Assembly (NCBI GenBank): GCA_009103225.1
Contig: RHPI01002262.1
Location: 785,213-849,212, forward strand
DNA from: Chlorokybus atmophyticus
Lineage: Eukaryota > Plantae > Mesostigma and Chlorokybus algae
Direction: 5' to 3'
Length of the DNA: 64,000 nt
Numbering within the stretch: the stretch's first letter is position 1; each line of letters begins with the position of its first letter. Positions 3,861 through 39,903 of the stretch are shown here, one piece after another. The position numbers and the translations under genes are program-made. The notes under the pieces were generated by a model. That model was not told where the DNA came from and made no database searches. It saw nothing but the letters and a program-made list of their open reading frames with translations.

Positions 3861-4295
3861 GTACGCGGAGAAAATGTACGGTACCCTCCCAAGCCAGCAG
3901 AAGGCCCCAGTCGTGATACCTTGGTGGTGGTGGGTATCTTTAGCACACATACGGCAACGCCCACTTGCCGCCAATAAGCTAACGCCCAATTAACTAACGT
4001 CAGCTCTCAGCTCACTGGCAGCTGGAAGCTGCATGTTAGCACACAGTCAAGATAACAGAAACTAACGTTTGTCACAGCAGCATGAGTGCATGCAAGGAGA
4101 TGCCGCCTCGGCCGCCGCCGCCGCCGCTGGCGGCTGCCATCATGATGCACGTGCCCCTACATGCGCATGCATGTGGCCTAGAGGCATCCTGCAAGATGCC
4201 TTGGGCTTACCACCCAAGGTGTAAGTCACAACCTGAGACCAACACAGCAGCCTTATCTCAGTGTGTGCCCCGTCCATCTCTCCACTGCCGCCGCC

Positions 4296-6598
4296 ATGGC
4301 TCAGGCTATCATACAACTCCTGCTGGTGGTCCTGGCCCTCATCGCCCCCGCTTCTGCCCACAACATTGTGTGCGAGTCTGCCCAAAAGCCAAAGACCACC
4401 GCTGGTGTGCATGGCTGTCACATACCTCGTTCTGAAGTGTTTGTAATCAACGTGTATCCCCTCACGTATTGCATGTGTGTGGCAGATTTGTTCAAGTATG
4501 TGCAGGCGGACCCATGCACCCTTGGTCCCAACTACTGGTGCACAGCCCCCAACGTGAGTTGCAGTTGTATCTGCTGAATAAGAAACAACCAACCAACAGT
4601 TGCAACAACAAGGCCTCATTGTCACCTCACTCATGTAGGGTCTGAACCAATGCCAGTCGGCCGGCAACGTCATTGGTGTGTGCGGATACAGCAGCGGAAA
4701 ATGCCCAGTCACCACGCAGGTGAGAAGCAGATTCCCTTCACATATTGTGTCACATCCTGTCTTGGCAGCTGGCACCTAATGCTTCAACAACACATGTGAA
4801 TGTCTTGCTTGTATCAGGAGGAGTTCTGCTCGAACCCGAGCTACCAGCCGCTGGCATTCAATGGCGGTATTGTCGGCGCCAACCAGGGTGAGTAAAGCAG
4901 CCATGTGTATCTCGCATGCACATACACACTTGCATGGAGAGGTGCTATAAGCCTGCTTTATTGATTGTTGTCATCTGTTCAGGCCTGTTCGGTTACTTTG
5001 CTTTCGCTCTCTATTGGGCGCCGACCTCGTGCCAGGCGGACAGCGGTGCTGGCGGCGGTTTCTGCAGGTGGGTGTGCATGTCTACTATAACTAGAAACAC
5101 CTGTAGTGACACTGTTGGCATGTGTAAGTAACACAACTTTCTCTCCACAGTGACTTCACCATCTCTGGCTCCCACGCCGCCAGCAACCTGGTCCTGCACG
5201 GCCTATGGCCGGACTTTGGCAGCGTGTATGCGTCTGAGCCTGCCCCGCCCAACTTCCCTGGCGCATACCAGGGTGGGTGTTGTTGTAGTCGTTGTTGCGT
5301 GCCCGTAAGTGCTTGATTGCACGCGTCTGTGTGTGCGCGCGTGCGCGTGCGCGTGCGTGTGTGTTTGCGCGCGCGTGTGTGTATGTGATCGTGCACGCGT
5401 ATGCACACATGTGCATCTGTGCGTGTGATATGCATGCAACTCAGTCAATCTTTGCAGGTTGGTCTCAATACTGCAAGGCAGCTTACCCCGGCGCCCCCGA
5501 CTTCAGCCTCTGCCATGTCAACGCCGCCCCCGCCCTCTGCCCCTGGGTCAACGCCTCCTCACCCACCTTTTCGCAGTCCGACTACGAAACCTGCGTGCGC
5601 GCCGAAGGCATCAAGCAATGCCAGGTAAGCATCAAAACACAACTCTTCACATCAACAACGACACCTTGATGAAGATGATGATGATGGGGATGATGGGGAT
5701 GGTGATTATGGTATCTTGCAGGTTCCTGATGAGACTGTTGCTGCTCTCGGTGACAAGTTTGAGGTGTATGCGCCCGGTTACCTTGCTGCGAAGGGAGTTG
5801 GGTCTTCGTTCCTGGACCACGAGTTCTTCAAGCACGGCTCGTGCCTAGGCGGTTACCTCACCAGCAACACCACCGCATACTTCGAGACCGGTCTAGGTCT
5901 CACCAAGGTTCACACACGCAAGGGCTCCGGTGAGAATAGTGTGCATACATGTGCACATGCATGCACTGTGTGTGAGTGAGTACATATATACACACATGCC
6001 AACGAGTATGCACACATGTGCATGGGCGCCTGTATGCACGTGCATATGCGCACACACGCGTATATGTATATGTAACAGAAAATGCACGCGCGCTTTCAGG
6101 CGTACACTTGTCACCTAGATTCGCTGACTCTTTGTCGCTTGTGCAGTGGGTTACGAGCTCGTTCACAAGAATGCCGGTGGCAGCGTCCCTACCGCCAAGC
6201 TGGTTGCCGCCTTCAAGAACAGGGCCGTGCCCCGCTGCACACGCGACTGCAAGCTCAGTGAGGTGAGTGACTCAGTGAAGTTCAGTAGCCTTGCGCGTGT
6301 GCCAGCTGTATAACGCTAACACACGCACGCACATGTGCACACACATGTTTGGGCACATGCAAGTACACGCACGCATACGCATACACGAGCGCTCATGTAC
6401 GCACGCATGGGTACACACACACGCACACATCATGTGACTGACTCAGTCTCTTACACGCTATACGTGCACGTGCAGATCTGGTACTGCTATGGCCGCGACG
6501 CTGCTGGCTTCCCGACCAAGCCGGTCAGGTGTCCGGCTGGAACCCTCCTCAGCAACAGCTGCGGCAGCTGCCCAGACATCCTGCTGCCAACCTACTAA
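4296..6598 (+). CDS. Secreted T2-family ribonuclease (multi-exon) with an N-terminal Cys-rich SapA-like motif
   Basis: Signal peptide MAQAIIQLLLVVLALIAPASA. CAS-I LVLHGLWP and CAS-II FLDHEFFKHGSC. FALYWAPTSC motif. GT-AG introns. Stop taa at 6596-6598. Confidence 0.9.
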
Positions 6599-7984
6599 GC
6601 ATCCGATCATCCTGTTAGCTCCACACTGTGTGGTCTTGTCGAGCGTCTCTGATTATAGACTTGGCTCAATAGTTAACTTATTGATATGTCAGATGGACAA
6701 CCTTGTCAGCTCAATTACCGATGCTGCGGTTTTGGTCACTAAGAAACATACGACCAAGTTGTGTGAACGATTTGAATAACTGCCTGCCAAATGGTTCGGT
6801 CTCAGTGCGGCCGCTGCAAGCAGTCCTGGAAATGGTGACATGGTTGCTGGCGCTGGGACAGTGCATGAGTCTCGTATGCACAACACCTCACTGTCACACA
6901 CGCCTACGCTTGCAAGCATGCAAAGTTGTGCACATGTTTCTCTTATATATAAACCCAGAAACACGTGTACATGAACACATATATGGGAGAGTGAGTGCAA
7001 ACTGCGTGCTGTTCCAATGCATGCGTGTGATGAATGACACTATGCATGAGCAATGACGCAGCGCATTGTGTGTACATACCAGCATACCCCTTTTGTACAA
7101 TAGTTTTGGAGATTTACGTGTACACACGCAAACAGGTAATTGACATTTACTAATTGTGCCTGAACAGCACTTACATATCTTGTTGCTGGCAGCCATGCTG
7201 CCGCATGCCTGTGCATAACTGGCACAGCTTATCAGATATAAGCTGGACACCAGAAGCAGCTGACGTTGTGCCTAACACGCAGCAGCAGACCCACCAGCAC
7301 GCACAGCACCAAGAGAGCAGAGCATACAACTCAACGCAGCGCTGGCCTTTCTGCCACAAACACTGGTGGCTCCATTGCAGAACACAACATGTAACGCACA
7401 CTTTGCTCTGACAATGCAACGTGGCTGAGTCACAGTTCATGATGACTACACAGCTTTGTCCCAACTGACCCCTTTGATCAAACAGGTAAAGTCTACAGCA
7501 AAGGTCGCAATCCTCAGCTGACACACCCCAACATTGCATTCCACAACAAACAACTGCAAACGTCTCAACTCTAAGCTACATTGTCCTGAACAACTGGCAA
7601 CAAGCTTTCCGCGCAGCGTAACGGTCACAACGTTCGAAAACTTGACGCCATCACCGTTGTCGCCGTCATCGCCATCGTGGTTGGCATCCACCTCCAAAGC
7701 ATCCAGCACCGCCACCGTCAAACCACCATCACCAACGCCACCACCATCATCATCGCCATCTCCACAGCCATCAGCAGCGCAGCGTAGCTCAGCAGCAGCA
7801 CCGTCGTTGTGTGTGAGCACCGTTGCTGGTGTGGCTTGCAAGCTTGCGGCGGCGGCGGCGGCGGGGTTGGAGGAGAAGGAGGAGTTTGAGCTGAACATGG
7901 ATGTGGAGGCGGTGGTGAGTGAGCAAGCCTGCAAGCATCGTTTAGGCGTGAAGAAGCTGTGACCTCAGCTTAGCGGCCCAGCTC

Positions 7985-10252
7985 ATGGTGGACAGGGTGA
8001 AGCACTGGCTGCGTGGGATGGATGAGGAGGGCGGCGGCGGCGGTGGAGGCAGCAGCGGTAGCAGCAGCGCTGGTGGCGACGGCAAGAGCTCGTTGATTGT
8101 GAGCAGGAAACCCAAAATCGCTGCTCGGAAAAAGGTTACTAGCAAGATCAACCACCAGGATGGGCCGCACTCTCCACGTGAAGACCATCAAGGCTCAGCT
8201 GAGGAGGTGAGAAGCATGACCGGTGACGAATAGTTGGGAAGAATTTTATGCTCAAGTGGACTTGGCAACCTCTTTGGTTGTTTTGTCACTCTTTCACTTA
8301 ACTGATCAATTGATTGTGGTTGACTCAGTTCGACTTGCTGTTGTGGCACTTCCTTTGGTAGTTAACGTAGTCTTGAAGTGTGGTTAAACTATTGCTCTTG
8401 TGGTGCATGGGTTTTTCCGTTCTAGAACTTGAACACAGATGTACCTCATTTAACATTGTCATTCACAGCTACATTGTGCCGAATGCAGCATAACCGGTGA
8501 AGTGTTCACCGGTGTAAGTAGCCAACATGTGCTGCATGTTGCACTTGCTCAGCTTATACCCACAGTAGCATGCTTACATGCATTCGGAGGATGTGTGCGC
8601 AATCTACATGTCAAACCGCAACTGCGCAACTGCACAATGGGCGTGCGCCTTCATGGCCTAAAGGCAAGCCTGTGCATGGTGATACCGCAGGAATTGCAGA
8701 AGCTTCGCAAGAAGTATGCAGACAGCACGCGATCCCTCGCGCAGCAGGCGCGCGCGCTTAACGCCTTGCAAGCAGCTCTGGACGAGGAGCGAGGCATGAA
8801 TAACAACAACAATACGGCTCTCAAGGTGGTGTTGGTCATGTGACTTGCGCGCCTCGAGTGTTGGTGATGATTGCGCACGGCTTATGTCTGCTTGCATGCA
8901 GTTGGAAGGAGCTCCCGATAACCCCACAGAGAAGCTCAAGCATGATCGCATCAAGCGGCTGGTGCGAGCGCATGGAGAGGTGCGCTGTACTTGTAGTGTT
9001 CAATCATGTGTTAAGCCAGCAATGCGCGCGCACGCATGCACTTACTCACACATGCCTGCGCACATATGGACAAAACAGTCATCACATGCACCAATACATG
9101 CATGCACGTGTGCACGCATATGCGCGTACACATGCAAGGTATTTTCGCCACTATCGATTGGTATAAGTTTGTGGCTTCACTGCACAATGATTGAAGGCTG
9201 AGTGTGCTTTATAACCAGTCTGCCACTGGCAGGAGCTGCTGCGTGCACGGAGCGAGTCCAGCTGGCTGCAGCGCGCTCTTTCCGCTGCAGAGGAGCGCGC
9301 TCGTTTCTGCGAACGCCGCAGGTTGGATACATTTGCCTGCACACAATCGTCGTTGGTTGTGTTGCTGGCCCAATGACACGCTGCTTTATGTCCTTTGTGT
9401 GACATCAGTGCTGCAGTTGCTGCTGAGGCCACAGCTGCCATCAATGAGGTGCAAGTGGCCGCGTCGGCCCAACTGGCCAAAGCCAATGCTCAGTCGCGGG
9501 CCGCGTTGCAAGCAGCAGAGGCTGCTAAGGTGCTGCTTTGTATGTCCATGATTTGCAAGCCGTATCACCCCAATCACCTTTGCGAGCATGTGTAATGAGA
9601 ACCTTCCCTGGCAGGAGGTGATGGAGGCGGCTGTTGACGAGTGCAGGAAAGAACGAGACAGGGCTGACAAGCTGCAGCAGCTGGTGAGTGTCATCATTAC
9701 TTACACATTCGTTCCTTTGCCAACATGAACCTGAACGCGGCTTGATTGTTGTTTTGGCAGCCATGCAAGGTGTGTTGCATGCATGTTTGCATGCATACAT
9801 GCGTGCATGATGCGTGCGTGCATTTGGCGTGCGTGCCTGTGTGTTTGGTTTGTTGTTCAACTTGCTTGCCATTGGCTTTGGCAATTGCTTGGTTTTTATT
9901 ATCTCATCATATTCTTCAAGAATCAACCTTGACTTCCCCGCAGCACATCTATCTTGATTGTACACAATGGCGTAATACTCTCCTCGTGTTCAGCTCGAGG
10001 AGCAAATGGCGCTGTTGCGAGTGCTGAAGGGCGAGAACGAAGCGCAGTACGAGAGGGCGAACGCGGCCGCAGCAGAGCGCGATGCCTTTGCCAAACAGCT
10101 GCAAGAGTCGACGGCTGAACTTCACACTGTCAAGGCCACTGCAACATTGCAGGTAGGTCACTCACAAGTTGTAATGTTTCACGCCAGGATGCTGTGAGCA
10201 CACATACGAGACTTTGCATAGCACGTGCGCATGCCCGTGAGTGATAGCAACA

Positions 10253-10291
<39 letters not shown>

Positions 10292-12540
10292 GCGTGTAAG
10301 TGTACATAGGCAAACACGTGTATATGTGCATATGTAATGTGCACACAAAGTCGTTTTACTGTATGCATACACACATGTTTACATAATGCTGTATACATAC
10401 ACAATGACAATGTACACATGCTTGCTTAGACTCGCTGCTTTATCAGGTGCAACAAGATGAGTTGCGACTAGCAACTGCGCATGCGGATGTGGAGTCGTTC
10501 TCCCGGCGTGCGGACACAGCGGAGAGCGACTTGGCGAAAGCGATTGCGAGCCGTGACACCATGGAAGAGGAGTTGAAGCTGACGAGGGCGCAGTTGAATG
10601 CCACACGGTACGTAATTTTGCATACTTATAGTTGCACACATAAAAACTCATACACACGTGCGCACGTACGCACGCACGCACACACGCACAGCACTGCTGC
10701 AATGCAATCAGCGAACTGCAACCTTTCGTTATCTACTTGGGTTTTGACTCCATTGTTTGACTTTGTTGTGAGTTACATAACTTGCGCAACATGCTTACAA
10801 CAGCCACCTTTCGGTTGTCACTTTTCTCACATGAGTTCAACTCGCTGATTGCACACTTTGCGTCCTTCTCTGCAGTGAGGAGCTGCGGCTTGTGCGCGTG
10901 GACTCGGCTGCCGCTGTGCAAGGTTCTGCAACTGCCATAAGCGCAGCAGATTCAGCAGAGGACAAGGCTCAGATTGCACGCAACCTGGAGTTCACAGTAC
11001 GCACCGTCCTTGACATCATTCAGCATGCTCAATGATCAGATCTGCATTCGTGTGCTACCTTTGCTTGTGCGTGTAATGATGTGTGTACTTGTGTGTGCAG
11101 GTCAGGCGCCTGCGCCTTGAGCTTGAAGAGTACAAGACGGAGTTGCAGCAAGAGCGCGAACAACGCCAGTCTGAAGTGAAAGAGCTTGCCAGAATGAGAG
11201 AAAGCCTTGCTGAAGCGCAACAGCAGGCAAGCCACATGGTTGTATCTGTATGAAGGTTGTACGAGTGCATGCGTGCATGTATTAGGCTGCACATGCAAGG
11301 CACATATAGTTGTCTGTTGTGTGGACGCGCTGTGCAATGGTGACTACAGCTGTGATGTGTGCCAGCTGGCTGATGTAGACAAGCGGGATGACGAGCAACA
11401 GATGCTGCAAGCTGCGATTGATGCTCAGGAACAAGCCCAACGGGTATGCAACCGTTGTTGGCTATGTGCCTTTGTTTATGTCTGACTGTTGCCATGTTAT
11501 GTCTGACTGTTGCCATGCAGATGTGCGATCAGCTGCTGCGCGAGGCCGCTGTCACGCGAGCCGTCCTGCTTGCAGCGTACAAGCGGCTGCGTCAGCTGCC
11601 CTCATCGCCTCACACCAAGTCTGAGGGTTCGTTGTGCAAAGTGATGATGATGATGATGATGATAGTGATGATAGTGATGATGATGAATGCGGGACAATTC
11701 ATAACATGTTGCTGACAATCCGACATATTCATAGGCAACTTGCCTCTGTTGGAACACTTGTTGGATGCGCTCGAGTGTGAGCGTGAGGAGTTGCTGGCTG
11801 AGGTGGTTTTCCAATACGGCGCATGCTTGAGTAGATGACATTGTTTGCCTCTAACTCTAATTGTGATATGGTGTTTGCTCAGAGTAATGTTCGCCTCAGG
11901 TGGAGCAGCTGCAGTCTGAGAACAGCGCTGCGGCCGAAGCCGTGCACGCACAGAGCGGGCTGCTGAGCCACCTCGAAGCTCAGACAAAGGACCTGAAACA
12001 TGAGCTCCGCCACATTGATTCACTGTGCACCACCGATCCCTTACACAACTTGCATGGTGTGTTGCTGCTGTTGTTGTTGCTGCTGCTGTATGCATGCTTC
12101 CTCGCTTCTTTCATGAGGTAACACTCTGACATTAGCTCTGAGCGTTACACATGTTGCAGACGCCATTCCATTGACAAGCGACAATGGCGCTGACTCAAGG
12201 ATGGAGCGCTCACGAGAGGGCAGAGGGGAGAGTACTGCCCGTATGGCGCATGATGATGAGAGAGATGCAGTATCGTGGAAACTCAAGGAAGCCGAGCAGG
12301 AGCAATTCAGGCTGAAAGATAGCATCCGTCAGGTAACGCAGTTGGCATGTTGATGTGTCATCATATTGATAGAGATCTTTACCCCCATCATTCTATGTGG
12401 CTGTGGCACCTGTGATCAAGGCTTCACCTATACAATGTGTCACTCTGCAGGCGCAGCAGCGCATGGAGCAAGGCGTGAAGCGGTGGGCTCAATTAGAGGA
12501 GGAAGTAAGCGAGCTGCTCGCGGAAAGACAAGGCAGCTAA
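7985..12540 (+). CDS. Long coiled-coil protein of unknown function (about 15 exons; start uncertain)
   Basis: A series of in-frame A/E/Q/L/R-rich exons bounded by AG/GT, e.g. ELQKLRKKYADSTRSLAQQARALNALQ and VRRLRLELEEYKTELQQEREQRQ, ending AERQGS-taa at 12540. Confidence 0.75.
10251..10292 (+). repeat. (GCAC)n tetranucleotide repeat in an intron
   Basis: Direct reading. Representative of the CA/TG/CACG-rich tracts found in most introns of the window. Confidence 0.9.
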
Positions 12541-13459
12541 CGCCATACGTTGTGTGTATACATTACATTGGCGTACATGTGCCATCATGCACAATGATTA
12601 TACAAGCTTAACAGGTCAACTTAGGTAAACGCGCACATGAGCTCAGCGTTTATGACTTATGTAAGTTGAATAATGCAATGCAGCCACATGGTTGCTACAA
12701 CGGGGGGCATCATGCTGCATGCACACAATATAGATGACAGGTACCGCCGAGCTCAGCGACCAAGAATAAGTATACCTACATGCTTGCAGCTGGTAACACT
12801 TTGATGCAGTGGCCTCCAGTCCAGTTGAGCTTTGTCCTGGGAGCTTTGTGTTGTACTATCTGGACATATCAATCAACCTTTGCTTCCGTAACAGCTATGG
12901 TGATGCCAGCGCACAATGTGACCGCCATCATGTAATCTACTTGGTTGCAATCTATTTGCTGTGCTTGTTTGTGCACACGCTTGCAATTACACACTTGCAG
13001 TCTACAGCTCGCACACTTGCACCCTATAGCTTTGTACTTGTAAGTGAGGTGGTACAGTTGGTGGTGAGGTCAGATGATGTTTTTGTTGTTGACTGCCATG
13101 ATGGTTTACTATGCCCAATGTATATAGTGCTCTAGACTGTGAAGGCACTCGCGCACAGACCTCCAGAAACAGCTTGCAAGAAGACCTGCCTTGCTGTGTT
13201 GAGTACAATCTTGTTGAAGGCACCCGTAAGCGACCCTATTGTCCAGTTTGCGTTGTTGCATTGCATACACTGATATTGACATTTCCCATACTCATCACTT
13301 CTACCCATGATCAACATCACATGCAGCGAGACACTTTAAGCTTAACTAACCCCAACTCAGAGGGTGTGAAAGCTGGAGAGAACAACACAATAGAAGATAC
13401 CATCCCAACTTTTGTTTATTGTCTGTGGCTGCCAAGACGGCGAACAGTACAGCTGTGTG

Positions 13460-16091
13460 TTAGGCCCTTAGGCAAGCCTTCTGTACTCTGACAACAAGCA
13501 ATTGTCGCATATTGGTGCAATCTTCAGCTGGACGTCTGAACTGCTTGACAGTCTTCCTTTCCCTGCGCAAACCTTTGAAAGCCTTGCGTTTGCAAATTGA
13601 CCGGGACCCTGGCCGGGACCCTTTGTAGGTTGTATTACCCTTAGGCAATATCAACTCAGCCTTCTCGTCCTCGCCCAAGTCCCATAACTGAGTGCCTATG
13701 CATTCATCATCCTCATACTTGATGTGGTGCGAGCATGTGGCCGCATCAAACTTCACCACAACACCTATGAAAGGAGCCAGATGAGTGGTAACATACTTGA
13801 ACAGATGATAACAGTGTGTCGTGCCACATTGTAAGTTCCTCACCTTTATACCACTTTTGATCTTCTGGCCAGTACACTCTGATGCTTTGGGCCACCAGAT
13901 GCGACCCTTTCAATGCAAGCTGCGCAACCATGACAGCTAAATACGGTCTCACGAACACAAATCTGTGTGCAGCACTGATCGTGTGGAAAATGATGAAAGC
14001 ACAGCAGGATGTTGTGCTGATGCACTGAGTGTGATGCTACTTGTATTTGCATACACAATGCAGCTGGGTTAGTGCTTACATGCTGACCTGTGCACCATGG
14101 TTGCCAGCGGCAGCCAGATCCTCTATCTTTCTCTTCAGCTCTTCATCAACTGGATGTGCATGTCGTAAGTACTCTTCAGCACCCTGAAATACTGCAGACA
14201 TATGTAGGATACATCTTACCTTCACAGCAACCGTCCTGTGCATGTGTGGCTGTGTCCACCACTGCAGGTGGCGCATCTGTAGCGTTGTCCAGCCGTGGTG
14301 GTTCTGCAAATCCCGGCTCGCCCTTGTTGTCAATCCTGTCATCTTTGCCCTCACCCTCCTCGTCCTCCTCCTCCTCCTCGTCCTCCTCGTCTTCGTCGGG
14401 ACTCTCATCATCCAGCTCCAGAGCATCGTTCTCACTGTCAGGATCAAGTTCCGAGTCATCGTGCAGGTTGAGGTCCCCATCCGAGTCATCTTCATCTGAC
14501 TCGGGCACTGCAGCTGGTGCAGGCGGACGGGAAGGACTGTCGCTGTCTTCAAACCCATCTGAATCCTACCCATCACATGAGTCAAAAGACCATGAATGAC
14601 TGTCTCAGACTGTTAGCTGACAGCCTTGCACATGACTTGTATGGCATCCTGACCTCGGTGAGCAGCTTGACGTTCTCTATGTGCTTGGTGCCGGCACGGA
14701 TGATTTCCATCTGATATGTGAATGCGCTCGGGTCTGGCTGGTAGCAGAGGACTGCATCACCAGTGCGGAGCTGCGTTACACCTGAAGATTGGTCACCTTT
14801 GTTCTCTTGCACAGGCGTGCACAATGGTACACACAGCAGCGATTGCAGACTGCGGGTGAGCTATGCATGCGAGTGTGTGCACATTCACTATAAATACACA
14901 TATTAAGTCAGCAGTTGGCAAGGGATTGCAGGTTGTGCTAAAGATTTTTACCAGCAAAGTGACGCCAACCACCGCTCAAGCCGCCACCATTGGCCCCCTT
15001 CCTGATAAACTTCATTGGGAAATCTACTTCCCGAAGCCGCATCATGACAGGAAACTGCTCATCTATCTGGCCCTGTAGGTTGTGTTGGGCGTTAGGCAGA
15101 GTTGCGTTGCCACCGTTTGGACACGCACACATACACAAGCGCACAAGCCTGTGACAATCGTAACAACTCTTCGGGGAGTCACCTTAGGTAGGTATGTGGC
15201 GAATTCAGCGGGCAATGCCATCCAGTAGCCTTTGGAAACATGTGATGGCAAGATTTTCTGTGACAACGATTGGCGAGATAAGCGTTGGTGGTGCAGTCTA
15301 TGCATGTCGTTGTTTATAACAAAGCTAATACCTTTGCAAAAGCTCGCCGGAGATTCTCGTCATCAATGTACTTCATGGCTGCATGCAAAGCCACTTCAGC
15401 TTGTCCATTCCTGAGAGTGTCCAACTCCTCTTGCGTGCAGAAGTCGCGGCATCCGTTCCAGCTCATACTTCCAGAGCCCGCTTCACGCTGCATGTTAATC
15501 GATGGAAAATTTACACGAGCATCCAAGCATGTCAGAACAGGATTATTGTGGCCGCAGCATGAGCGGTTGCTAACAAATGCTGGCAAAATGCTGTTATTTG
15601 AGAGGTGTACATGATTGAAAGCAGCCTCAGTGCTGCATGTTCTGACCTTGCTGTTGCGCCTGCCTCCTCTTCTGGGTTTTGCATCAACAATCTGCGCATA
15701 CTCATGGTCTTTCTCTGCGTAGTTGACCTTTGGAACGCCGACGAATCTAGTTAAGTTGGAAGGTTAGTATACTGTTCAGGCAACCTTTGACCCCAGTGCA
15801 GCATGTTGCAATGAATAGTCACCTGCTAGATGTACGCACGGGTGATGCCGCAAGCAAAGAGTGCGCTCGTGCTTGCACATTTCTGTGATTATAATGCACA
15901 CTGTGAGACACATATTCAAGATGCTTTAAGGGCACCGCTTTAAGTCAGACGGCATGCAGCTACCTTCTGGGTGGTGTTGCCTTCTTGCGCAAGGATTCTG
16001 CATGCTCCAATAATTGCAAATCCCGTAACTTCTGCTTGTTAGCTTCCACTCGCTCACGGCGCTGTGCCTCAAGGTCTACATGCAACACCAT
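13460..16091 (-). CDS. REM-type B3 DNA-binding protein with an acidic tract and a Tudor-like domain (paralog A)
   Basis: N-term MVLHVDLEAQRRERVEANKQKLRDLQL. B3 motifs KILPSHVSKGYWMALPAEF, GGLSGGWRHFA, LRTGDAVL. D/E tract at 14330-14510. Tudor-like LVAQSIRVYWPEDQKWYKG/VVVKFD...HHIKYEDD. The 3' end is less certain. Confidence 0.82.
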
Positions 16092-17660
16092 TGTGGGCAA
16101 AACCTGCATTGCCAGAAGCATTGAGCAGATTGAGCCTCCAACTGTCTTACAAAACACACACACGCAGTAGAAGGCAAAATGGATGCAGACAATGCGCGTA
16201 CACTGGTCGCACGAAGAGCAAGCCATAACCTGTTGTACAAACTGAATCAACTGAATCAACTTGTACATGCTTGCTGGCACGCAAGTTAGGGTCGATTTTC
16301 AGCTGATGGGGTCAGTAGTATTCTTTCCTTAGGAGGCTGAACTGTGACACAGCAGTAGCAACGAAATCAAAACTTGCAGCAGCTTGCTGCTTCACTGTGG
16401 CTTGCACCAATCGTGCATGCTGAAGAATACCGGAAGAACTCAAGTTGCATTGTGTAGGGAGTGATTGAGAGGAAGATGAAGAAGAGGCAGCATTGCATGC
16501 ACGCCAGACTGGTTGGCAAGAACCAGTCAAAAGCTTGGACATTGGCAGGTTTGGTAACAGACTGCAGCCGCAAGCAAATGACGGATTGTATTACAAAACA
16601 ACGCTTTGCGTGTCTTGCATACCATAATATCTCAAGGGTTCAGACGGACCACACCTTACCAATCAGCAGCAGCCAGAAGCAATCCAATGCAACGAACAGC
16701 TAGGGGAAGATGCTGATCCGCGAGCACCAAACCCTTCAGGTGACGTATCCAACTCTCGCAGACTGCAGCTCTTTACAACCCTGGCTATGCCACCAGCAAT
16801 GCCAACGCCAAGCTTGCCGCCGCCGCCGTAATAGCGTCCAGCGCAACCTTTTTGGCGGTTTGTGGTCAAGTCACGGCCGGTTGGGGTCGTAAACTCAAAC
16901 CGGCCGTCTTGAACGGTTACGAATCACCTAAGCAGCCGCCCAATATCGGTCATGGCGTCATGGTAAGCTGCCATTGTCCGGCATTAGCTTCTGAATGTCC
17001 GAACAGAAGCGGTTTCCCGCGCGATTGTCATGGTTAGTTAGCCACGTTATTTTAACCATGTGGGGAAGCATGCAGCAGCCAAGCTGATGCTACCAGCTAT
17101 GCTGCAGCTTGCCGTTGAGGCGTCGGCAGCTGTGAGCTTCTCCTGCTTGTGGTTGTGGCTGAGGACGTGGTCGTGATTGTGTGTTGTAGCTTCTTGAGCA
17201 TGCTTGAGGTTGCATGAAAGCCTGTGCGGCTGTGTGTACGGTCAGGCGGGCGTTTGGCTGGCTGGCTGGCTGGCAAGCGTAGCCGGCGTCAGCGTTGGGC
17301 GCTGCTTGTTGCTAAGCGGAGCGGAGAAAACTTTCTTCAAGAAAGCGCGCACTTTCTTTCAAAAAGAACGCTTGTTGTCAGGTAGCTACGTGCATGTAAG
17401 CAGTAGACAGACGTTAAGTACATAACTTTTGACGGCAAGCAGTGCAGTTTGGAGAACCCACATTGCTTGGTAATCCTGTAGCTTTTCGCGAGATGACCAC
17501 TTGCCTCAGTGTCATACTCATTGGCACATGAAAGCTACAAGATGGTATAGCAGTTTGAAAGTGAAGTTTGTGTGACATGTCAGCTGACTCGTGCAAGCGC
17601 TGTGTGTAGCTTGTCAGAGTGGTTGTCTGCTTCGGCTGACACCACTACTCTGGGCAAGAA

Positions 17661-30246: not shown

Positions 30247-30661
30247 TCATTGAAATGGCGTCACTGCAGTTGACAGTGCCAGATGTTTCATATAGGGCAG
30301 CATTATTGCAGGCCGACAGTGACTAACTGTTTGATTATGTACACTACTATTGCCAGCCGTGTTGCACATGTTCACGCTGTAATCATCCATCAGGAGGTTG
30401 TGTATTGCAAACGACTGTATTTGTGCTTGTGCGACCCTCCCCGAGTTGAGTACCGTAGGCTAAGACGCTGCCGCTCTGTGACACTTCTGTCTGCACTACA
30501 TCACTCCCTGAACAGCTGTATGAACTTACAACCTACCCTATCCTACCCTATATGTATTATCAACTTGTCGTTGTGCAGGTATGAACACTTGGCTGTGTAT
30601 ATGCTTATCAGTACCTTCAATGCTATGGCATTGCTAAGTAGTTTGTGAAACTTGTTCTTCC

Positions 30662-33600
30662 TCATCCTGTGGGATCGTGTACTTGGTACTCCCCCGACGC
30701 GTGCAGCACCCCCATCAGGTACAGCATGGCGTCATACGCTGGAAACTCCCCTTGCGGCACCTATGAGACCACTCAGGTAAGTGCATTACACCAGCAACCA
30801 ACTACTTATTCAACACCTCTCTCCCATGCTCACCTCTGTGTCCCACAGCGTCTGTATGTACCCCAAACCCTCCTTCCCCGTCACTTTCTTCGCCAGTCTC
30901 GTCGTCAGCCGCGGCAGGAACGCGTTCATCCCCACCAGACCGAAGCGGTCGACCGTGCCGTTGGAAGGGAGCGGAGAGCCGGAGAGGGAGTAGAAGGGTA
31001 GGTAGTGCTGCTGGCCTTGGGCTGGGTGGGGAAAAGTGTGAGTGTGTGGGAAGGTAGGAGGCAAGTGGTTGGGGTGAGGGGGCGTACCATTGAAGAAGTT
31101 GAAGAGGCGTTTGCGGTAGGCGTCTGAACGGAAGATCTCCTTCGGCTCAAACCATGCCCAATCCAACTGTGGTCGTAAAGGTCAGAACCATGGTGTGCTT
31201 GCATGCGTGTTGAGTGTCGTGTGCATGCAGTGGTACAACGCACATGCGCACACATACACGCGAGTACACACACGCTTACACATTCAGGAGTGGTCAAGAG
31301 GCGAGTACACACGCACGCACGCATGCATGCAGACGCGTGCACACAAGCGCACGCACAGAGACACACATGCACGCAAGCATGTATGGGCATGCATGTATGT
31401 TTGTGAGCGCGCGCAAACACCCTCACACTCCAGCACCAACTCACCGCAAGTTGGTGTCCTGCCATCCACGCATGCTTTCCGAAATACGCTTCCCCGGTCC
31501 CCTCCCCGACCGGCGTCCCGTCATGCAGCGTCGCTTCCGGAAACAGTCCGGTCTTGGCATTCGCTACAGCCTCCATGTACTGGCGAGACTTCACGGCCAA
31601 CTGGTGCCAAAAAGCTTTCTTGCCGCCACCGTAACTGACAAGGGCAAGTTTGATAAGTTAGGTGTCATCCCAACATACAGATTTGACTGCAATTGCCAGT
31701 CGTTCACACGCAGGCATGCATGTTTGCACTGCTCACAGCATGGGGTATGGCATGTAATGAGCCTATCACTTGGTATTGGAGCGTTTACTAAGAGTGACTA
31801 AATTTCATGTAGAGCATTACAGTATTGCACCCCTTTTGGTTGGCTGTGTCCAAGGCCACGACCTACTTACCGGTGGGACATGGTTTGGGCTAGGATCTCA
31901 TAAAAGGCTGGCATGTGGACAGATGGCCGCGTGAGGACAGTCCTGCCAATTGAAGTGAGTGATCACATTTCAACATGTGTGTGCCTGTGCATGTCCGTGC
32001 GTGCGTGCACGTGTGACGCATCATGCAGAAAATAAGGTATGTTTTGCTCACCCTCCATCAACATTGGTAAGGTACACGTCCAGCGTCGTCTTGTTGATCA
32101 TATTGACTATCCCCGTGCTGGCGTTCCAGCTCCCACCGGTTTCCTTGCCTATCATCGCCTGGAGGATGTTCTGGCCTTCCAGGTAATAGTCTCCACTCGC
32201 ATCAGGTCCTGAGACACAAAGCGTGTTGATGTGGTCCTGTAACGTTGTCCTGTGATGTGTTATGCAACATGTTTGTGTTGGCAATACCTTCGAATTGCCA
32301 GCGCTGCGCGGCAAATATGAGAGACATAGCCATATATTGTGCAGCGAAGGTGTCGGGATCGGGATCAACTAGTTGTCCATCAACAGTGACCTGAACAGGT
32401 GATGAAGAGAGGTTTATGACTGTCAGTCCCATCATGACAAGTAACGTAAATGACCAGTTTAAATTGAATAAACTCACTTCTCCTGCGCAAAGGCCTGCGA
32501 GCAAGCTTGGAGGCTGATACTGCATGCGCAAGCGCACAAAGTTCCAGATCTTGTCAAAGTCTGGCTTGACGCTGAGTACAAGATGTGAATGTTTGTAATA
32601 TGTCCTTGCAATGCATTACACACAGAGACTGCGTGCTTGCGTGCGTGATGAGTGCGTGTGTGCATGTGTGTGTGTACGTGTGTGAGTGTGTGTGTGCGCG
32701 CGCACATGTGTCAGTGTAGCGCTATGTTCGCATGTGACTGGGCGTAAGTGTGCATGCATGTGCACACAAGCACACACACACATACTGTCAAACATCATGT
32801 CTCCCTCTCCCTCACTTGTATTGTAGCGTGACCATCATTGCGAGCGCCATGACATCCGATCGCACAACATCTGCCGACCCATCTTTGACCCATCCCATGT
32901 AATCAGGAGTCTGCGTGTAGACAGGGACCCTACCTCCAACACCGTAAAACACTTGCTGGTAAGAACTGTTCATGTTGGTTTGGACCTCCAGAGTGCTCTG
33001 CAGAGTGTGAGGACATTTGTGTTAGGGGGGGGTTGGATTGGGTGGGTAGGTGGGTTGTGGTGCACTTACGTAGCCCAATGTGGCGAAGTAATTCTGGTAT
33101 TTCCCGGTGTAGAATGAACCGAAGCGAAGGTCGCCTTGGCCGGCCTTGCCAACGATGGTAACGGCTGCAAAGAAAACGTGTGTTCACTTGTGTGCATGCA
33201 CACTAACATACACGCGCACACACATACACGGATGCACCTGCGCACGCACGCATGGGCATACGTGCATGCACACATACGCGCACACGCACACAGGCACGCA
33301 CATATACACACATACACGTGCACACACGCGCGCACGCATGGGCACACGCTCATGCACACACAAGTAAACACGCACACAGGCACGCACATACACACATACA
33401 CACACGCTTGCTCGCGCTCGCGCGCACGCATGCACGCATGTAACGTTGCGGCCCTGCTTTACCTGGAACACCTCCAACGATGATCACTGCCAGTATAGCA
33501 AAGGCAGGCGTGCGCAGACCCCTGTGTCGCACAAACCACATTATGTTATAAGCATGTTAACACTGCGTGCATCACAAACCGTTCGTGACAAACTTGCGGG

Positions 33601-36600
33601 TACTTATGGGGTACTCACCATACTGGCAAGTTGAGTATCGCCGCAAGTGTGCAGCGGGCAGCGGGCCACGTGTTGAGAAGCACAAACATGCCCAAACCAA
33701 GGGAACCGCCGACGCTGAACGCACCCCTCGCTGGACCAAGTATCTGATGCATACAGCGGGTTAGTCAATGGGTGGTGAACAAAACATTGCGCGTGTCCGT
33801 GTGCATGTGCCCGTTTGTGCGTGTGCGCAGATGCGTCTGCACGCAATTATGGGTGTATGTGTGTGTGCGCACGCATGTGCGCATGTGCATGCGTGCGTGC
33901 GAGTGTATGCGCGTGTGTGTGCACACGCGCGTGGTCGTGTGTGCGTTTACGCGTGGGCATGTGTGTGCGTGCACGCGTGCTTATGCATGCATGTGTGCGA
34001 GCGTGTGTGCGGGTGTATGTGTGTGCATCTGCGCGCGCATGTGTGTCTCAATGCGTGATACGAGTTCAATTGCACGCACATCGACTGCTCCCCACTCACC
34101 GGCACCCACAGCGACGCGAGCGCGACCCCCATCCCGCACCATATGCTCACGCACATGAACAGGTTCGGCAGCTCCAGCGACGGGAAGATCCCCTCCACGT
34201 GGGTACCCCACGCCATGGCCTTTCCACCAACAGCAGTCAACACCGCCTCGATAGTACCTATTGAAGGTGGTGTTATTGTTGTTGTTGTTGTTGTGAGCGT
34301 TAATGTATCACTTACCGAGGAATGTAATCCATGCGAAGCCGAACCATCCCTGCATGGCGCGCCACAGGTCCACGGCGGCGGTGCCGTCCAGGAAGAGGAT
34401 GTAGCAGGCCAGCATCATGCCGATGAAGCGGAAGGACTGCGTGCGGGAGGATGGGTCAGTGTGCGTGCGTGCGGNNNNNNNNNNNNNNNNNNNNNNNNNN
34501 NNNNNNNNNNNNNNNNNNNNNNNNNNNNNNNNNNNNNNNNNNNNNNNNNNNCCCTGTTACCACCAGGCATGTGTTACACGCGGCGGTGAATGACTGTTGT
34601 TATCTGACAGTGCAATGTGTCACTACACGCTGAGAAAGAAAACACAAAAAGGAAACACAGTTTGTGTCTCTCTACGCTTTCTCGTGCACATCGCCTATCA
34701 CGTATAAGTAAACTTGTTGCATTGGTGTCATTTCATTAACCAAAGAGTCTTAAGTTACGCTTGTTTGTCGGGGGGGGAGGTGCGTGCGTGTGCGCGATAA
34801 TGTGTACTCACCTGGTACAGCACCATGCTTGCGACAAGTATGCTACCCTTTGTCCAACCCTCACCTGAAGGCGCAGGTGTTGTACTGCTTGCCAGTGTGT
34901 GTGTTGTTGTGTGTCTTGCATGCGCGCTCACACACGCACGCACGCACGCATGTGCATAGCACTCATGGACGCATGGACGCACCTTGCACGAAGAACTGCA
35001 CAGGGGAGATGCCGGCGATGAGGTAAAACATGGCAAGGATGAAGATGTTGAAGGCCACAATACTCCCAAGCGGGTACAACGTCTGCATAACCAAAACAAA
35101 TGTTATCTCTGTGATAAGGTCTTCACATGGGTACAAGCGTCAAAACTCACACGTGCGTACCATGTCGCAGAAGACCATGAGGCGCGCGAACCAGATGAAG
35201 AAACTCTGCCGCCGCTGGGCGCGCGTCCAGTAGCCGATATCGTCCTGGTGAAGGGGCTGCATAGGGTAAAAGGTAAGGGTCCTTGACTGTAACCCAATAG
35301 CTTCTATGTGGCAGTATAAGCTAGTTCTGTTGGATTGTGTATAGGGTGTGCGTGCGTGCGTCCAAGCGTCCTTGTGTGTGGGCGGGCGTGTGCATGTTTG
35401 CACGTGCGTGTGCGTGTACGTGTGTGTGCGTGCCCCACCTGTGTTTCGCCGGCGATGTCCTGTCGGTGATAGTCCTGCAGCCGTCGCTTGTACTGCAGCC
35501 TGAGCGGCGGCTCCAGGAACCGCTTCTTGAAGATGCGCCAGTCCAGCGCCAGCAGAAGCATCTGGACGGACCTGCAGGTAGCGAAAGCAGTCGATCTGTT
35601 GGTATACTCACAAGAACATGCATACTTTGCATGCATGTTATGGTGCAAGCAGACGGCGGTTATTACTGTATGAGTGTGCACAATGTGCATGCGCATATGT
35701 GCGTGCGCATGCGTCCGTGCACACGCATACTTGCATGTGTTTGTGTCGCACATTCACAACCTACTACTCCCCACTCACCCGCACACCCATCGCTTCCGTT
35801 CTTCCATCGTCTCCCCCGCGCTCTCCCTGCACAGCCCGCTGCACAGGTTCAGATTCAAGTAACTCCCCTGCCACCCGAACGCGTGCAGCTTGTTGCCCGT
35901 GGCCGCGTCCTCCGTCAGGCAGCCGTAGATGAAGCCGAGGGAGTCGTCGAGGGCGGGGCGGAAGAAGAGGGCGTTGGTGCCGGCGAAGGAGGCGAGGCCG
36001 AGGCCGTCGCGACCGGGCTGGGGGAGGGAGAGGGTGAGTGTGAGTGTGTGCGTGCACGGAGTGAGTCTTGGTGGGGTTGATGGTTTTGTTGTTGGTGTGA
36101 TGCTATATGGTGTGGCGTGTGGTTTGAGTTGTGGAGTGACAGATGCATGTGTGCGCATGCGTGCGTGCGTGCATGTGTTTAAGTGCTTGATGGCACTGTG
36201 TGTGTGCGTGCGTGCGTATGTGTGCATATGTGTGCGTGCGTGCGCGTGCGTGTGTGTTCGTGTGTGCTCTTCAGATCACTGATGCACTACAACTTTTGTG
36301 ACCTGCATGGATGCGAAGAAGAGGCCGTTCGATTGGTACAGCGGGTCATCCTCCCCATTCGACTCCGCAATATTCGTGAACGTTTGCGGCGTCTGCACCC
36401 CATGCACCCACCATCACGCACCATCACCCACACACCCACACACCCACATCACATTTCACACGTCCCTTACCTGCACAAAAGCGACCTCCCAGTTCGGCCT
36501 CCACCTCAGCTCCTTCTTGTCGTAAGTGTAAAAGACAGGCAGAGTGTACTGCAAGAAGGTCGGCTCGGGCTCCATGTCGGCGTCCAAGAAACCCAAAAAG

Positions 36601-39238
36601 TCAGCCGTGGTGCCTGTGGGGGATACACACAATATGTAGTTTGCTGTTGTGTTTTGGCATTGTTATGTTGTTGGTTGATGTCGCGCGCGCGCACACGCAC
36701 GCATGCACACGTACACACATATACACGAGCGTGCAAGCGCACATACACAAGTGTATAAGTATACATGTGTGCATGTGCAAACACACGTGTGCCCTTGCAC
36801 GCGTGTGGGCGCATGTGCGCAAGCAAGGTGTAGATACGCGTGCGTGTGCAGGCGCGCGCACGCACGCATGTACACGCGCACGCTCGCACACACACACTGA
36901 CTCCTCTACCCTCCCCTACCCGCATTGTATATGGCGTTCTCCAGGTTCCCCGTCTTGAAGTGCGACTCGCGTCCCTTCATCCGCGCGATGATCGACACCG
37001 CGGGGAGCTTGCCCGAATCGTCCACGTAGGTCACGATCAGGACGCCGCCGGGAGCAGCATGCCTCCTGTTGGGTTAGTAAACATGTTGGTCATGTGGGTT
37101 ATGTGTAAGCTTGTGTTTGTGGTTGTGGGTGGGTGGGTGTGGCTTGCCTGGGGAGCATGTGGCCGGGGACTTTCATACGGTAGCTCTTACAACCCTTCAT
37201 CAGACCGGAGACCTGTGTGAGTTTGCGGGGGGTTAGGACATGATGTTGACAATGACGGTGGTGGTGGTGGTGGTGGTGGTGGTGGTGGTGGTGGTGGTGA
37301 TGATGATGTTGCCACTTAAAAACAACAACTGAGATATGCAGATGTTTACCATTTCTTCCATCTCTTGCCCAAGAGTGGACACGCTGTATCTCCCGTCTTT
37401 CCTCTTGCCAAGATACCCATCATCCAGAATCTGCGCACACGCACACGCACACAAGTGAGGCACAATGCAGACGTGATAGTAAAGACCAAAACACAGTCGT
37501 TCGAACGATGATCCCTGTGCACAGGACAGGTTTGCATGTGTTACCTTCACTCTCAGCTTGCTCGCAGGGTAATCGAGCGCGAGACACTTCTGCAAAGGCC
37601 CCTTCACCTGCATATGCAAAGCCAAATGGCTCCAGTCTCCTGGTTGCATCACTCAAGCACCTTGAGGTAATCTGTGCGTGTGTGCACGCATGTGCGTGTG
37701 CGTGCGTGTGTGCAGGCGTGTGTGTGTGTGCAGGCGTGTGTGCACACACCGCCACCCCCACCCACACGCACGTACACACGCATGCACACGCACATGCGTG
37801 CACACTCATACGCACATGCACATGTGTACGCACGTGCGATTGCACACCTGTGCGTGCATGAGTGCACATAAGCACATGCCCATGCACATGTATGCGTGCG
37901 TGTGCACCCACCCACCCACAGGCACACGCGCACGCACACGCCCCGCNNNCCTCCCCCTCACCACATCGACCGGTTCCAGATAATGGCATATCATCATGTC
38001 CACGACCGGCCACCCCCGTTCATCAAACCGCGGCCTCAGCGACCGCAGCGTCCGGAACTCCCGCCGCGTCGACCCCCAGAAGTTGAAGAAGAAGAAGATG
38101 TTGAGGAGGAAGGAGAGGAGCTCGGAGAGGAGGAAGAGGGTCGAGACGAACGCGTTGTCGTAGGCCTGGAGGGAACAAGTTGTCTGTCAAGTGGGTGGGA
38201 GTGATGGTGATGGTGTATGTGTGCGTGTGCGTGTGTGTATGTGTCTGCGTGTGCGTGTGGGTGCGTGCGCACGCATGCGCCAACACACTCGCTCGCGCGT
38301 GCGCATGCAGGCATGCATGCATGTGTGTGTTGAGACGTACTTGTATCAGGGCCCAGAAGTAGAAGGGACTCAGCAACATGAATATTATGTAACAGGGACG
38401 GAAGAGGTACCTGGCATGTACACAGCGAACGCATTGAGAATAGGGACCACTCTCTCATGCATGTTTTACGCACTCACACACGTACGCATGCGCACACACA
38501 CACGTGTGCACGCGCGCGTGCACACATACATGCTTGCCTAATGATCATAGGAGTGGTGTACTTGGAGGCCGCTTCACGCATGGGCTCGTCTTCAGGCACG
38601 TCTTTGTGTTTGGCCCATCGGCCTCTCAGCCCAATCTGCGGTCGCTGCCACCACCGTGGGCTTTTCATCGACGGTGAATGAGCCGGTATGTTGCTGCTGC
38701 CGTTGTTGATGCTGTTGTTGTCCTTTGGTAACACTCTCCCGTTGCTCACTTTTGGCATTTGCGTCTTGGTCGCAGGCAGCGTGGGCGTGTTGTTGGGACT
38801 CTTCAAGTCCACATGCACGCTGTTGTGATCAACTGTTGGGAACATTGAGAGTGAAGGGTTGGCTCGGACTGAAGTCACATGCTTAACCGGTTCTGGCGAT
38901 TCCGATAGGGAGGACAACTCTGAATCCGGATCTACATGTGGATCTGGTTCTGGTTCTGCATCCGGGTCAGGTAGATCCGGATCGATGTTGCTCTCGGGTG
39001 GAATGAGCAGGAGCAAGCGAGAAGCTGGCGACAAGGGTCCAAGAGTTTGAACCGGTTCAGCTGATGCGGCTCCATTTGAGGTTGAGATTGGGACGGGTTC
39101 AACGGGTTTGGCTGATCTGGATCTGATGGATGAACCCCTCTCCTCACCCTCTTTGAACCCAACATGTTGGCCTGAAGCACGCCCGAGCGGAGATGCGCGG
39201 AGAGTGCGTGGGGAGCGCGAAGAGGTAGAAGGCAACAT
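30662..39238 (-). CDS. Cellulose-synthase-like GT2 processive glycosyltransferase fused to a C-terminal GH8 (Rex-like) domain; about 25 exons
   Basis: GT2: [24 protein letters not shown]...[45 protein letters not shown], plus several TM helices. GH8: [88 protein letters not shown]. Intron phases are compatible across the junction and across the N-gap. Confidence 0.9.
34475..34551. other. Assembly gap (N run) inside an intron of the GT2-GH8 gene
   Basis: N bases. The flanking exons (…VLYQ| and |SFRFIG…) are both phase 0, so no coding exon is obviously missing. Confidence 0.95.
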
Positions 39239-39903
39239 TGTGGTTGAACAACTTTAGAATGCTTGTCACAAAGGGTGCATCTGCATAGAGCCACAGCACA
39301 CGCAATGGCCAAGACATCAGAGATGAATTTCCTGCGACTCAGTGCCTTCTTGTTCAAGAAGGCACTGGGGTTGGCAGCCTTGCACACATAGTCTGCTGAT
39401 TTTATTCACAGTGGTTATGTGTCAGGTTGACAAAAAGCACCACTCCTACACCACTCCAGCACTCTGCGCTGCATGACTTTACCGCAGGTGTGCCTGCTGT
39501 TGGCGAGCTTTGCTTGCACAGTTCCTTCCGACAAACGACTGGAAATTCTGCACTGTGCAGTCGTTCATGCCTGCTGAAACCTCTAGCACAATCCATCATC
39601 AGGCTGCATGCTGTCTTGAATCAATCTGTCCACATGGTGTGCAGGTGTGTATGTGTTGCGCGCGTGCGTGTTACACAGTGAATACCCTGTTACCACCAGG
39701 CATGTGTTACACGCGGCGGTGAATGACTGTTGTTATCTGACAGTGCAATGTGTCACTACACGCTGAGAAAGAAAACACAAAAAGGAAACACAGTTTGTGT
39801 CTCTCTACGCTTTCTCGTGCACATCGCCTATCACGTATAAGTAAACTTGTTGCATTGGTGTCATTTCATTAACCAAAGAGTCTTAAGTTACGCTTGTTTG
39901 TCG
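34552..39903 (+). repeat. 219-bp identical direct repeat, copies 34552-34770 and 39685-39903
   Basis: ccctgttaccaccagg...cgcttgtttgtcg is identical at both sites. The first copy starts immediately after the N-gap. Confidence 0.9.

Follow-up and report, generated by a model that had tools for sequence, protein, structure and literature searches.

The DNA analysed here, referred to below as the window, is a stretch of 64,000 nucleotides of the green alga Chlorokybus atmophyticus (contig RHPI01002262.1, positions 785,213–849,212 of the forward strand), and all coordinates are counted from its first nucleotide. Between positions 39238 and 30662 its minus strand carries what we consider to be a single nuclear gene for a protein of 1286 amino acids, in which a processive GT2 glycan synthase is followed by a full-length GH8-fold domain. 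Our preferred explanation, to which we give a probability of roughly 0.6, is that of one gene encoding a synthase with a non-catalytic, outward-facing and glycan-handling GH8-fold domain. That the GT2 and GH8 halves form a single polypeptide is, taken by itself, very probable.

The gene model was built from peptide anchors and GT..AG borders. It consists of 26 exons that together form one open frame from the ATG at 39238 to the stop codon at 30662–30664, and all 25 introns are of the GT–AG type. The locus is of the eukaryotic type, with many short introns that are rich in TG/CA repeats. Exon 1 (38478–39238) contains the start codon and encodes a low-complexity N-terminus of about 250 amino acids. 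Exons 2–3 (37962–38410) provide two N-terminal membrane helices recognized by hydropathy (aa 258–279 and 280–308) and the beginning of the catalytic domain, and align to residues 239–315 of Escherichia coli BcsA. The GT2 catalytic domain proper, as identified by the alignment to E. coli BcsA and by a search of the PDB, is encoded by exons 4–10 (35439–37607), while the gene model and hydropathy assign the C-terminal membrane region of the synthase to exons 11–16 (33463–35256). Intron 16 (33165–33462), a TG/CA-rich phase 1 intron of 298 nt (gtaaag...ttgcag), lies between the exon of the last helix and the first GH8 exon. Exons 17–26 (30662–33164) then supply the end of helix 7 (AVTIVG), a linker of about nine residues, the GH8-fold domain (aa 882–1284, delineated by PDB and profile matches) and the stop codon. 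The sole TGTAA downstream of the stop, a poly(A) signal of the green-algal type at 30526–30530 on the minus strand, is found 132 nt past it and likely marks the 3' end of the mRNA.

The junction between the two halves is well defined. Exon 16 ends in GGT GTT CCA G/gtaaag at 33463 and exon 17 begins at 33164 with ttttctttgcag/CC GTT ACC (slashes mark the splice borders). The donor CCAG/gtaaag and the acceptor ttttctttgcag/CC are both canonical and both of phase 1. Exon 17 contains no Met, an in-frame stop is present six codons upstream of its acceptor and the first Met of the GH8 part, at aa 908, is already located within the domain. Given this strong acceptor, the lack of a Met and the in-frame stop just upstream, exon 17 must be spliced to an upstream exon. 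The same exon holds both the AVTIVG segment that completes helix 7 and the start of the GH8 homology, with a linker of nine residues in between. At this start a 13-residue peptide aligns with KGAYATGAYRNLF of a Novosphingobium GH8 protein, where the leader of the latter ends (its residue 63). Read-through of the exon 16 donor leads to a stop after 36 further codons, and a search of intron 16 for poly(A) signals retrieved neither TGTAA nor AATAAA. An earlier reading of this DNA, made without database searches (the sequence-only reading), had proposed that the last transmembrane (TM) helix is spliced in frame into GH8 with no stop or new signal peptide between them, and the 26-exon frame with its phase 1 junction agrees with this. 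The peptides that it quoted all occur on the minus strand where it had placed them.

Two runs of RNA data from different studies, X1 (2021) and X2 (2013), were evaluated through the share of sampled 31-letter words that they contain. Each holds 0.32 of the words of 30600–36500, compared with an expected share of 0.318 for the 19 exons plus the untranslated region, 0.174 for the GH8 exons alone and 0.144 for the GT2 exons alone. It follows that the same samples contain spliced transcripts of both halves, with hardly any share left over for an additional exon. Across the junction (33070–33521) the RNA runs hold 0.15 of the words, against 1.0 expected upon retention of intron 16, and this intron is thus not retained. 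For the same segment a further run, X7 (labelled organism D, 2018), holds 0.28 of the words compared with 0.15 in the RNA runs of organism A; this run could consist of DNA from the same species or a near relative that was filed under a different name.

Intron 16 is also flanked by a direct repeat on the minus strand, with GCAGTGATCATCGTTGG (AVIIVG) at 33490–33474 and GCCGTTACCATCGTTGG (AVTIVG) at 33166–33150, and read-through of the donor yields GKAGPQ, which resembles GKAGQG of exon 17. This similarity is marginal, being reached by 33 out of 2000 shuffles, and provides only a hint that the repeat could be a trace of the origin of the intron.

The synthase half aligns to E. coli BcsA with 73 bits over aa 291–372 and 426–613, and the ILDDG, HFKTGN, LDAD, QTP and TED motifs are in register. 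ILDDG (aa 367–371, encoded at 37430–37416) and LDAD (aa 458–461, at 36587–36576) are placed opposite ILDDG and FDCD of E. coli BcsA, HFKTGN is encoded at 36962–36945, and TED (aa 561–563, at 35915–35907) coincides with the TED of both Rhodobacter (PDB entry 4HG6) and E. coli BcsA; like the gene itself, all these motifs are on the minus strand. The acceptor-binding QxxRW motif is replaced by ERKRW (aa 599–603, at 35801–35787), in which the Arg and Trp are kept and the Gln has become a Glu. Such a Glu is an unusual change amid an otherwise canonical catalytic core. The BcsA/CesA layout put forward in the sequence-only reading thus stands for D, DxD and TED, and fails for QxxRW. When exon 9 is compared with the PDB, all 14 of 14 matches are cellulose synthases, led by Rhodobacter BcsA (5EJ1, E = 4.8e-9; 4HG6, E = 5.7e-9). 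TED and the RW motif are aligned in these matches, and plant CesA chains match over only 30 amino acids around TED. Pfam searches with single exons of the GT2 part returned sub-threshold matches only (PF03552, PF13641 and PF00535).

Several features that would tie the synthase to one of the well-known classes are missing. The N-terminal 250 amino acids contain no CxxC pairs as found in the RING zinc finger of plant CesA. The plant class-specific insertion between the DxD and TED blocks is absent, this segment being contiguous as in BcsA. A PilZ domain is likewise absent: the alignment to E. coli BcsA stops at aa 613 (residue 507 of BcsA) and the C-terminus is occupied by the GH8-fold domain. 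Judged by these comparisons, the synthase half classes as a BcsA-like/Csl-type processive GT2 that is neither BcsA proper nor a plant CesA, and on its QxxRW motif it would count as a variant and not as a textbook member of GT2.

The last ∼405 amino acids are a full-length homologue of GH8 of the Rex (reducing-end xylose-releasing exo-oligoxylanase)/xylanase type. Against a profile of 121 relatives, all of which belong to PF01270 and many of which are named 'oligosaccharide reducing-end xylanase', the C-terminal domain scores 169.6 bits over aa 882–1045 and 1080–1284, while the best of 2000 shuffles reaches 7.1. A direct comparison of the spliced C-terminus with the Novosphingobium GH8 gives 127 bits (aa 882–1045 and 1082–1284). 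Six exons searched singly against the PDB have GH8 chains as their best matches, and these are colinear: exon 18 matches GH8 residues 23–84 (E = 0.008), exons 19/20 residues 85–101 and 117–144 (E = 0.2), exon 22 residues 198–216 (E = 0.5), exon 23 residues 214–263 (E = 6.7e-6) and exon 26 residues 368–398 of 399 (E = 2.9e-4). Both the earlier assignment of the entire C-terminus to Rex-type GH8 and the placement of this region by a hidden Markov model, which had been suggested as a check, are borne out by the profile and PDB matches. In Pfam the single exons of this part find nothing. E. coli BcsZ gives no match to the spliced protein, even when all HMMER filters are switched off and E values up to 10 are allowed. 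By these criteria the GH8 part is of the Rex/xylanase type and not of the BcsZ type.

A further match of exon 23 is an annotated GH8 of Novosphingobium (E = 9e-6). This closest annotated bacterial relative resides on the 757 kb plasmid pABRDHK22 inside a complete xylan-utilization cluster (690–16440) that comprises a TonB receptor, GH3, GH8, two GH43, an acetylxylan esterase, xylA and xylB. A look-up of exon 23 in the ESM Atlas produced only weak leads of the (α/α)6 type. When exon 23 alone was used to search for related loci, the three metagenome 'relatives' turned out to be threonyl-tRNA synthetases, and none was found in genomes.

Individual residues were compared in an alignment of the algal domain with 81 bacterial relatives (Acidobacteriota, Pseudomonadota and Bacillota), and none of the residues that make up the GH8 catalytic machinery is preserved. 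The acid Glu (Glu70 of Bacillus halodurans Rex), present in 81 of the 81 relatives, is Asp947 in the alga (codon at 32856–32854, minus strand as for those that follow). The signature Asp (Asp128 of Rex; 80 of 81) has become Phe1006 (32348–32346), and a Tyr conserved in 81/81 is Val1086 (31920–31918). The base Asp of the GH8a/Rex branch (Asp263 of Rex; 81/81) corresponds to His1156 (31474–31472) and the neighbouring Arg (81/81) to Met1159 (31465–31463). The conserved aromatics at the equivalent positions W939eq, Y951eq, W990eq and Y1262eq are gone as well. In contrast to this loss, 58 of the 104 near-invariant columns are kept, and these are mostly structural; they include Trp969, Arg-Trp1021–1022, the HxPxFYE segment 1087–1093, Trp1111, Trp1158, Trp1170 and Trp1251. 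Because the catalytic residues are replaced, the domain is best regarded as a GH8-fold homologue and not classified as a GH8 enzyme, and for the same reason hydrolytic 'editing' is unlikely and binding more likely.

Hydropathy indicates two helices before the catalytic domain and five to six hydrophobic segments behind it. After the ExxRW motif, peaks are seen at aa 677–707, 709–738, 745–765 (an IF3-like helix), 781–811, 811–840 (weak) and 842–877 (the strongest). In a 19-residue Kyte–Doolittle window the segment at aa 811–840 scores 1.4 and the final helix 2.62. Against these six peaks of the alga, E. coli BcsA shows five, namely TM5, TM6, the interface helix, TM7 and TM8; peak counts were compared because a global alignment of this region with the E. 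coli protein was not trustworthy. The weak segment we take to be the counterpart of TM8 of BcsA and TM6 of CesA, and the extra helix, which is preceded by 'RTP', is presumably the counterpart of the seventh helix of plant CesA. With one pass more than BcsA, the protein would expose the GH8-like domain to the outside or the lumen, and such an orientation is likely. The sequence-only reading had likewise envisaged a synthase with its own lumenal or extracellular module for binding or editing of the glycan; its location and a binding role remain in agreement with our data, while editing does not, with Asp, Phe, Val and His now standing in for catalytic residues. The four N-glycosylation sequons that it had cited in support are present (NSS at aa 909, NAS at aa 1054, NKT at aa 1064 and NGT at aa 1212). 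However, four per 418 amino acids is about the number expected by chance, so they are compatible with an outside position and do not argue for it.

The picture of the protein that we favour would start with a disordered cytosolic N-terminus, followed by two helices, the cytosolic GT2 domain of a processive β-glycan synthase of the BcsA/CesA superfamily, the helices of the export channel and, some nine residues on, the GH8-fold domain. The synthase would extrude its chain through the channel, with the GH8-like domain sitting at the exit on the outer or lumenal face. Devoid of the acid/base pair, this domain would not hydrolyse the chain, and its (α/α)6 groove may have been retained as a glycan-binding module. 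Such a groove could receive, guide or tether the nascent chain for its release, alignment or attachment to the wall. The domain would then represent a fused non-catalytic counterpart of BcsZ, KORRIGAN and the GH6-like domain of tunicates.

A number of points weigh against this reading. The RNA support consists of word shares, and the value of 0.15 for 33070–33521 (46 words) is nearer to that of exon 17 alone (0.154) than to that of exons 16 and 17 together (0.223), the two being indistinguishable with these data. The G+C content at third codon positions (GC3) differs between the halves, with 0.81 in the GT2 and 0.68 in the GH8 part. These same observations would suit two transcription units or a chimera, in which the synthase mRNA ends near exon 16 and the GH8 exons belong to a separate mRNA or short isoform; an unspliced mRNA with its stop after 36 codons would indeed encode a plausible synthase devoid of GH8. 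We nevertheless judge such an arrangement to be rather improbable. Exon 17 combines a strong acceptor with the absence of a Met and an in-frame stop just upstream, the phases at the junction match, the 298 nt intron is not seen in RNA contigs and carries no poly(A) signal, and the RNA word share is fully accounted for by the 19 exons and the untranslated region. Moreover, the GH8 part would lack a signal sequence if helix 7 were not joined to it. The orientation of the domain is another point of concern, as the topology was deduced from hydropathy and the side hinges on a single weak peak (aa 811–840, score 1.4). Were this segment not to cross the membrane, the number of passes would be even as in BcsA, and the C-terminal domain would be cytosolic and might replace PilZ as a regulatory or substrate-sensing module. 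The extra C-terminal domain of BcsA is cytosolic, and the algal catalytic domain resembles BcsA more than it does plant CesA. On the other hand, there are six peaks against the five of E. coli BcsA, the weak segment is presumably a real helix in BcsA and CesA and the extra helix is very hydrophobic (2.62). In addition, the GH8 relatives are all secreted, and the helix is found at the position of their signal peptide. A cytosolic location is consequently in our view quite improbable.

Glycan binding by the GH8-like domain is something that we infer, with moderate confidence, and its function could be understood differently. The domain might still be an enzyme with a remodelled site, in which Asp947 would serve as acid and His1156 as base, acting as a transglycosylase or a lyase-like trimmer that edits or releases the chain. 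Both BcsZ and KORRIGAN are active glucanases that work together with synthases. A carboxylate is still present at the acid position and a possible base at the base position, the residues that define the fold persist and none of the ten exons breaks the frame. Yet all five residues that are invariant in 80–81 of 81 relatives have changed, including the Tyr and the Arg, the aromatics are lost and the branch is ∼47 times the median length. The same pattern in tunicate CesA has been read as a loss of hydrolysis (PMC7464555), and an active enzyme appears unlikely. At the other extreme, the GH8 part could be a decaying, functionless relic attached to a working synthase, as the loss of all catalytic residues, the very long branch and a GC3 below that of the synthase half might suggest. 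This we find hardly credible for a region of ten exons and nine canonical introns that shows no stop or frameshift over 418 codons, keeps 58 of 104 near-invariant columns and has its exons transcribed and spliced in two data sets.

Further reservations about a single gene with an outward-facing, non-catalytic domain stem from the assembly. A gap of 77 N (34475–34551) is present inside intron 12 (34989–34437), 38 nt ahead of the exon 13 acceptor (34437/34436). The frame closes only with the weaker exon 12 donor TTC/gtgcaa (34990), whereas a better-looking donor, CAAG/gtgcgt, 7 nt downstream of 34990, would be out of phase. In view of this ambiguity a small exon may be hidden in the gap, and the scaffold join across it is tentative. 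Exons 12 and 13 do have the same orientation, both are of phase 0, and their products are neighbouring hydrophobic helices linked by a few residues, a pair that resembles the TM5/TM6 double peak of E. coli BcsA. The 219 nt adjoining the gap (34552–34770) are 100% identical to 39685–39903, and since the DNA at the gap is a perfect copy of this second segment, it was probably a dispersed repeat that broke the assembly. The duplicate itself may be either a dispersed repeat or an assembly duplication; its second copy is located ∼450 nt upstream of the start codon and both copies end on the same base. Exons 13–26 are contained in uninterrupted sequence (30662–34474) that covers four hydrophobic synthase segments (those of exons 13–16, corresponding to three membrane helices and the IF3-like helix) followed by the whole GH8 part, and for this reason the synthase–GH8 junction is independent of the gap.

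No orthologue with the same architecture was found, although exon-sized queries could not reach proteins of 1286 amino acids, and the library-wide HMMER search for orthologues was weakened by an intron inside the 94-residue query. Searches for protein homologues with the stretches around exons 18 and 23 yielded no candidates within a length window that excludes 1286-residue proteins.

The borders that are uncertain are the 3' end of exon 1, the exon 5 donor and the exon 12 donor, none of which touches the fusion point. The last ∼20 codons of exon 1 resemble a TG repeat and in-frame alternative donors are available at 38526 and 38502, while the exon 5 donor (37330, gttgtt) is weak. Over its 254 codons exon 1 has a GC3 of 0.55, which equals that of the local non-coding DNA and compares with 0.81 for the GT2 part. 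Its product is of low complexity and rich in Ser, Pro and Asp, and the true start or coding extent may differ. Relative to an earlier model, a long GH8 exon is now divided by an additional in-frame intron of 87 nt (32477–32391), and 'IMWFVRHR' together with one 18-residue peptide proved to be intronic and not exonic. This intron 19 (32391–32477, minus strand) is free of stops, such that its retention would add 29 residues to the GH8-like domain. Its translation within the 94-residue HMMER query attracted four matches to repeat proteins (ankyrin, CE2_N/BACON and a Cys-rich repeat) that are due to chance and carry no meaning.

Concerning the origin of the fusion, no BcsA-like gene occurs within 8 kb of the GH8 gene at any of the 81 bacterial loci. 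With no such neighbour at the 81 loci and BcsZ unrelated at this level, the fusion is not an inherited bcs operon, and the candidate of an inherited bcsA–bcsZ operon was rejected. It is probably within the algal lineage that the two parts were joined. Tree building places the algal domain outside all bacteria, with a branch length of 6.6 changes per site compared with a median of 0.14 (∼47 times), and no donor can be named because this branch is so long. The GH8 part probably came from bacteria, and its nine spliceosomal introns and long branch suggest that this happened long ago. When the GH8 gene joined a resident synthase, helix 7 may have taken the place of the bacterial signal peptide.

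The nearest analogue that is known is the CesA of tunicates, in which a single polypeptide combines GT2 with a C-terminal GH6-like domain whose active site is substituted (PMC7464555). Shared with the presumed algal fusion are a processive GT2 followed by a bacterial-type glycoside hydrolase fold with a substituted catalytic residue, the eukaryotic host and the spliceosomal introns (PMC7464555). The fold differs, being GH8 (α/α)6 and not GH6, as does the host, a green alga instead of an animal. Tunicates are proposed to have received adjacent bacterial GT2 and GH6 genes together, whereas in the alga the two halves probably met in the host. No published GT2–GH8 fusion was found in the literature searched, where absence is not proof, and in this the sequence-only reading, which knew of no eukaryotic case, is upheld. 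The GT2–GH8 design was accordingly not found described, and the tunicate GT2–GH6 precedent is known.

Other systems share parts of this organization. In the bacterial BcsA/BcsZ pair a GT2 core of the BcsA type is likewise matched with a GH8-family protein across the membrane, but BcsZ is a separate, active enzyme from another GH8 branch. Compared with BcsA, the algal protein lacks PilZ, has two instead of four N-terminal helices, carries ERKRW and has no BcsB in view. The Rex and GH8 xylanases that form its best matches (1WU4 from B. halodurans, Rex8A 6SHY, TtGH8 6G00 and pXyl 1H12) share the fold-defining residues with the algal domain. Unlike the latter, which is tethered to a synthase, they are soluble and secreted, belong to xylan-utilization loci and have intact Glu, Asp, Tyr and Asp residues. 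In plants, KORRIGAN is an active, membrane-anchored GH9 endoglucanase that is separate from CesA and is located at the outer face of the membrane. Plant CesA with KORRIGAN thus has in common with the algal protein, in the likely orientation of the latter, a synthase and a glucanase-fold protein at the outer membrane face, whereas the RING, P-CR and CSR regions of plant CesA are absent from the algal synthase. Co-expression of CesA and KORRIGAN has been noted (PMC11096116). As for GH8 in algae, lichen-forming Trebouxiophyceae possess a free, horizontally acquired and active GH8b lichenase in their nuclear genome, and the same study notes that CAZy lists GH8 from bacteria only (PMC11126685). That enzyme is stand-alone and cleaves lichenan, whereas the Chlorokybus domain is a fused member of the Rex/xylanase branch whose catalytic residues are gone.

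The identity of the product is a more speculative matter. A xylan or glucoxylan, as hinted at in the sequence-only reading, is pure conjecture, because a domain lacking its catalytic site says little about the product. A GH8-like clamp together with the Gln-to-Glu change in QxxRW might mark a non-cellulose product, and the reducing-end pocket of the Rex type might hold the chain end that is made first. It is also conceivable, although we consider it doubtful, that the alga independently reached the solution of the tunicates, with a non-catalytic clamp that sets chain release, chain length or fibril assembly.

Some repeat features of the gene may be mentioned for completeness. Intron 5 contains a long (ACC)n microsatellite (37245–37300, minus strand) that is read as poly-Thr or poly-His/Pro in open reading frames, imperfect TG/CA-rich repeats of a family with 33 copies (D1) are spread over most of the introns and a run of three N (37947–37949) is present within intron 3.

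To our knowledge, every well-studied cellulose synthase has a glucanase-fold partner, be it BcsZ, KORRIGAN or the GH6 domain of tunicates, and the role of this partner is debated. The algal protein would be a compact version of such a system, with one gene and one polypeptide. It would also add to the few bacterial GH8 genes recorded in eukaryotes, with a domain fusion that was made in the algal lineage and not inherited as an operon. A second independent case in which the partner is fused and non-catalytic suggests that binding or guiding the chain, and not cutting it, is the useful property. If the alga did arrive at the tunicate solution independently, such synthases would have a recurrent need for a groove that handles the chain where it leaves the channel.

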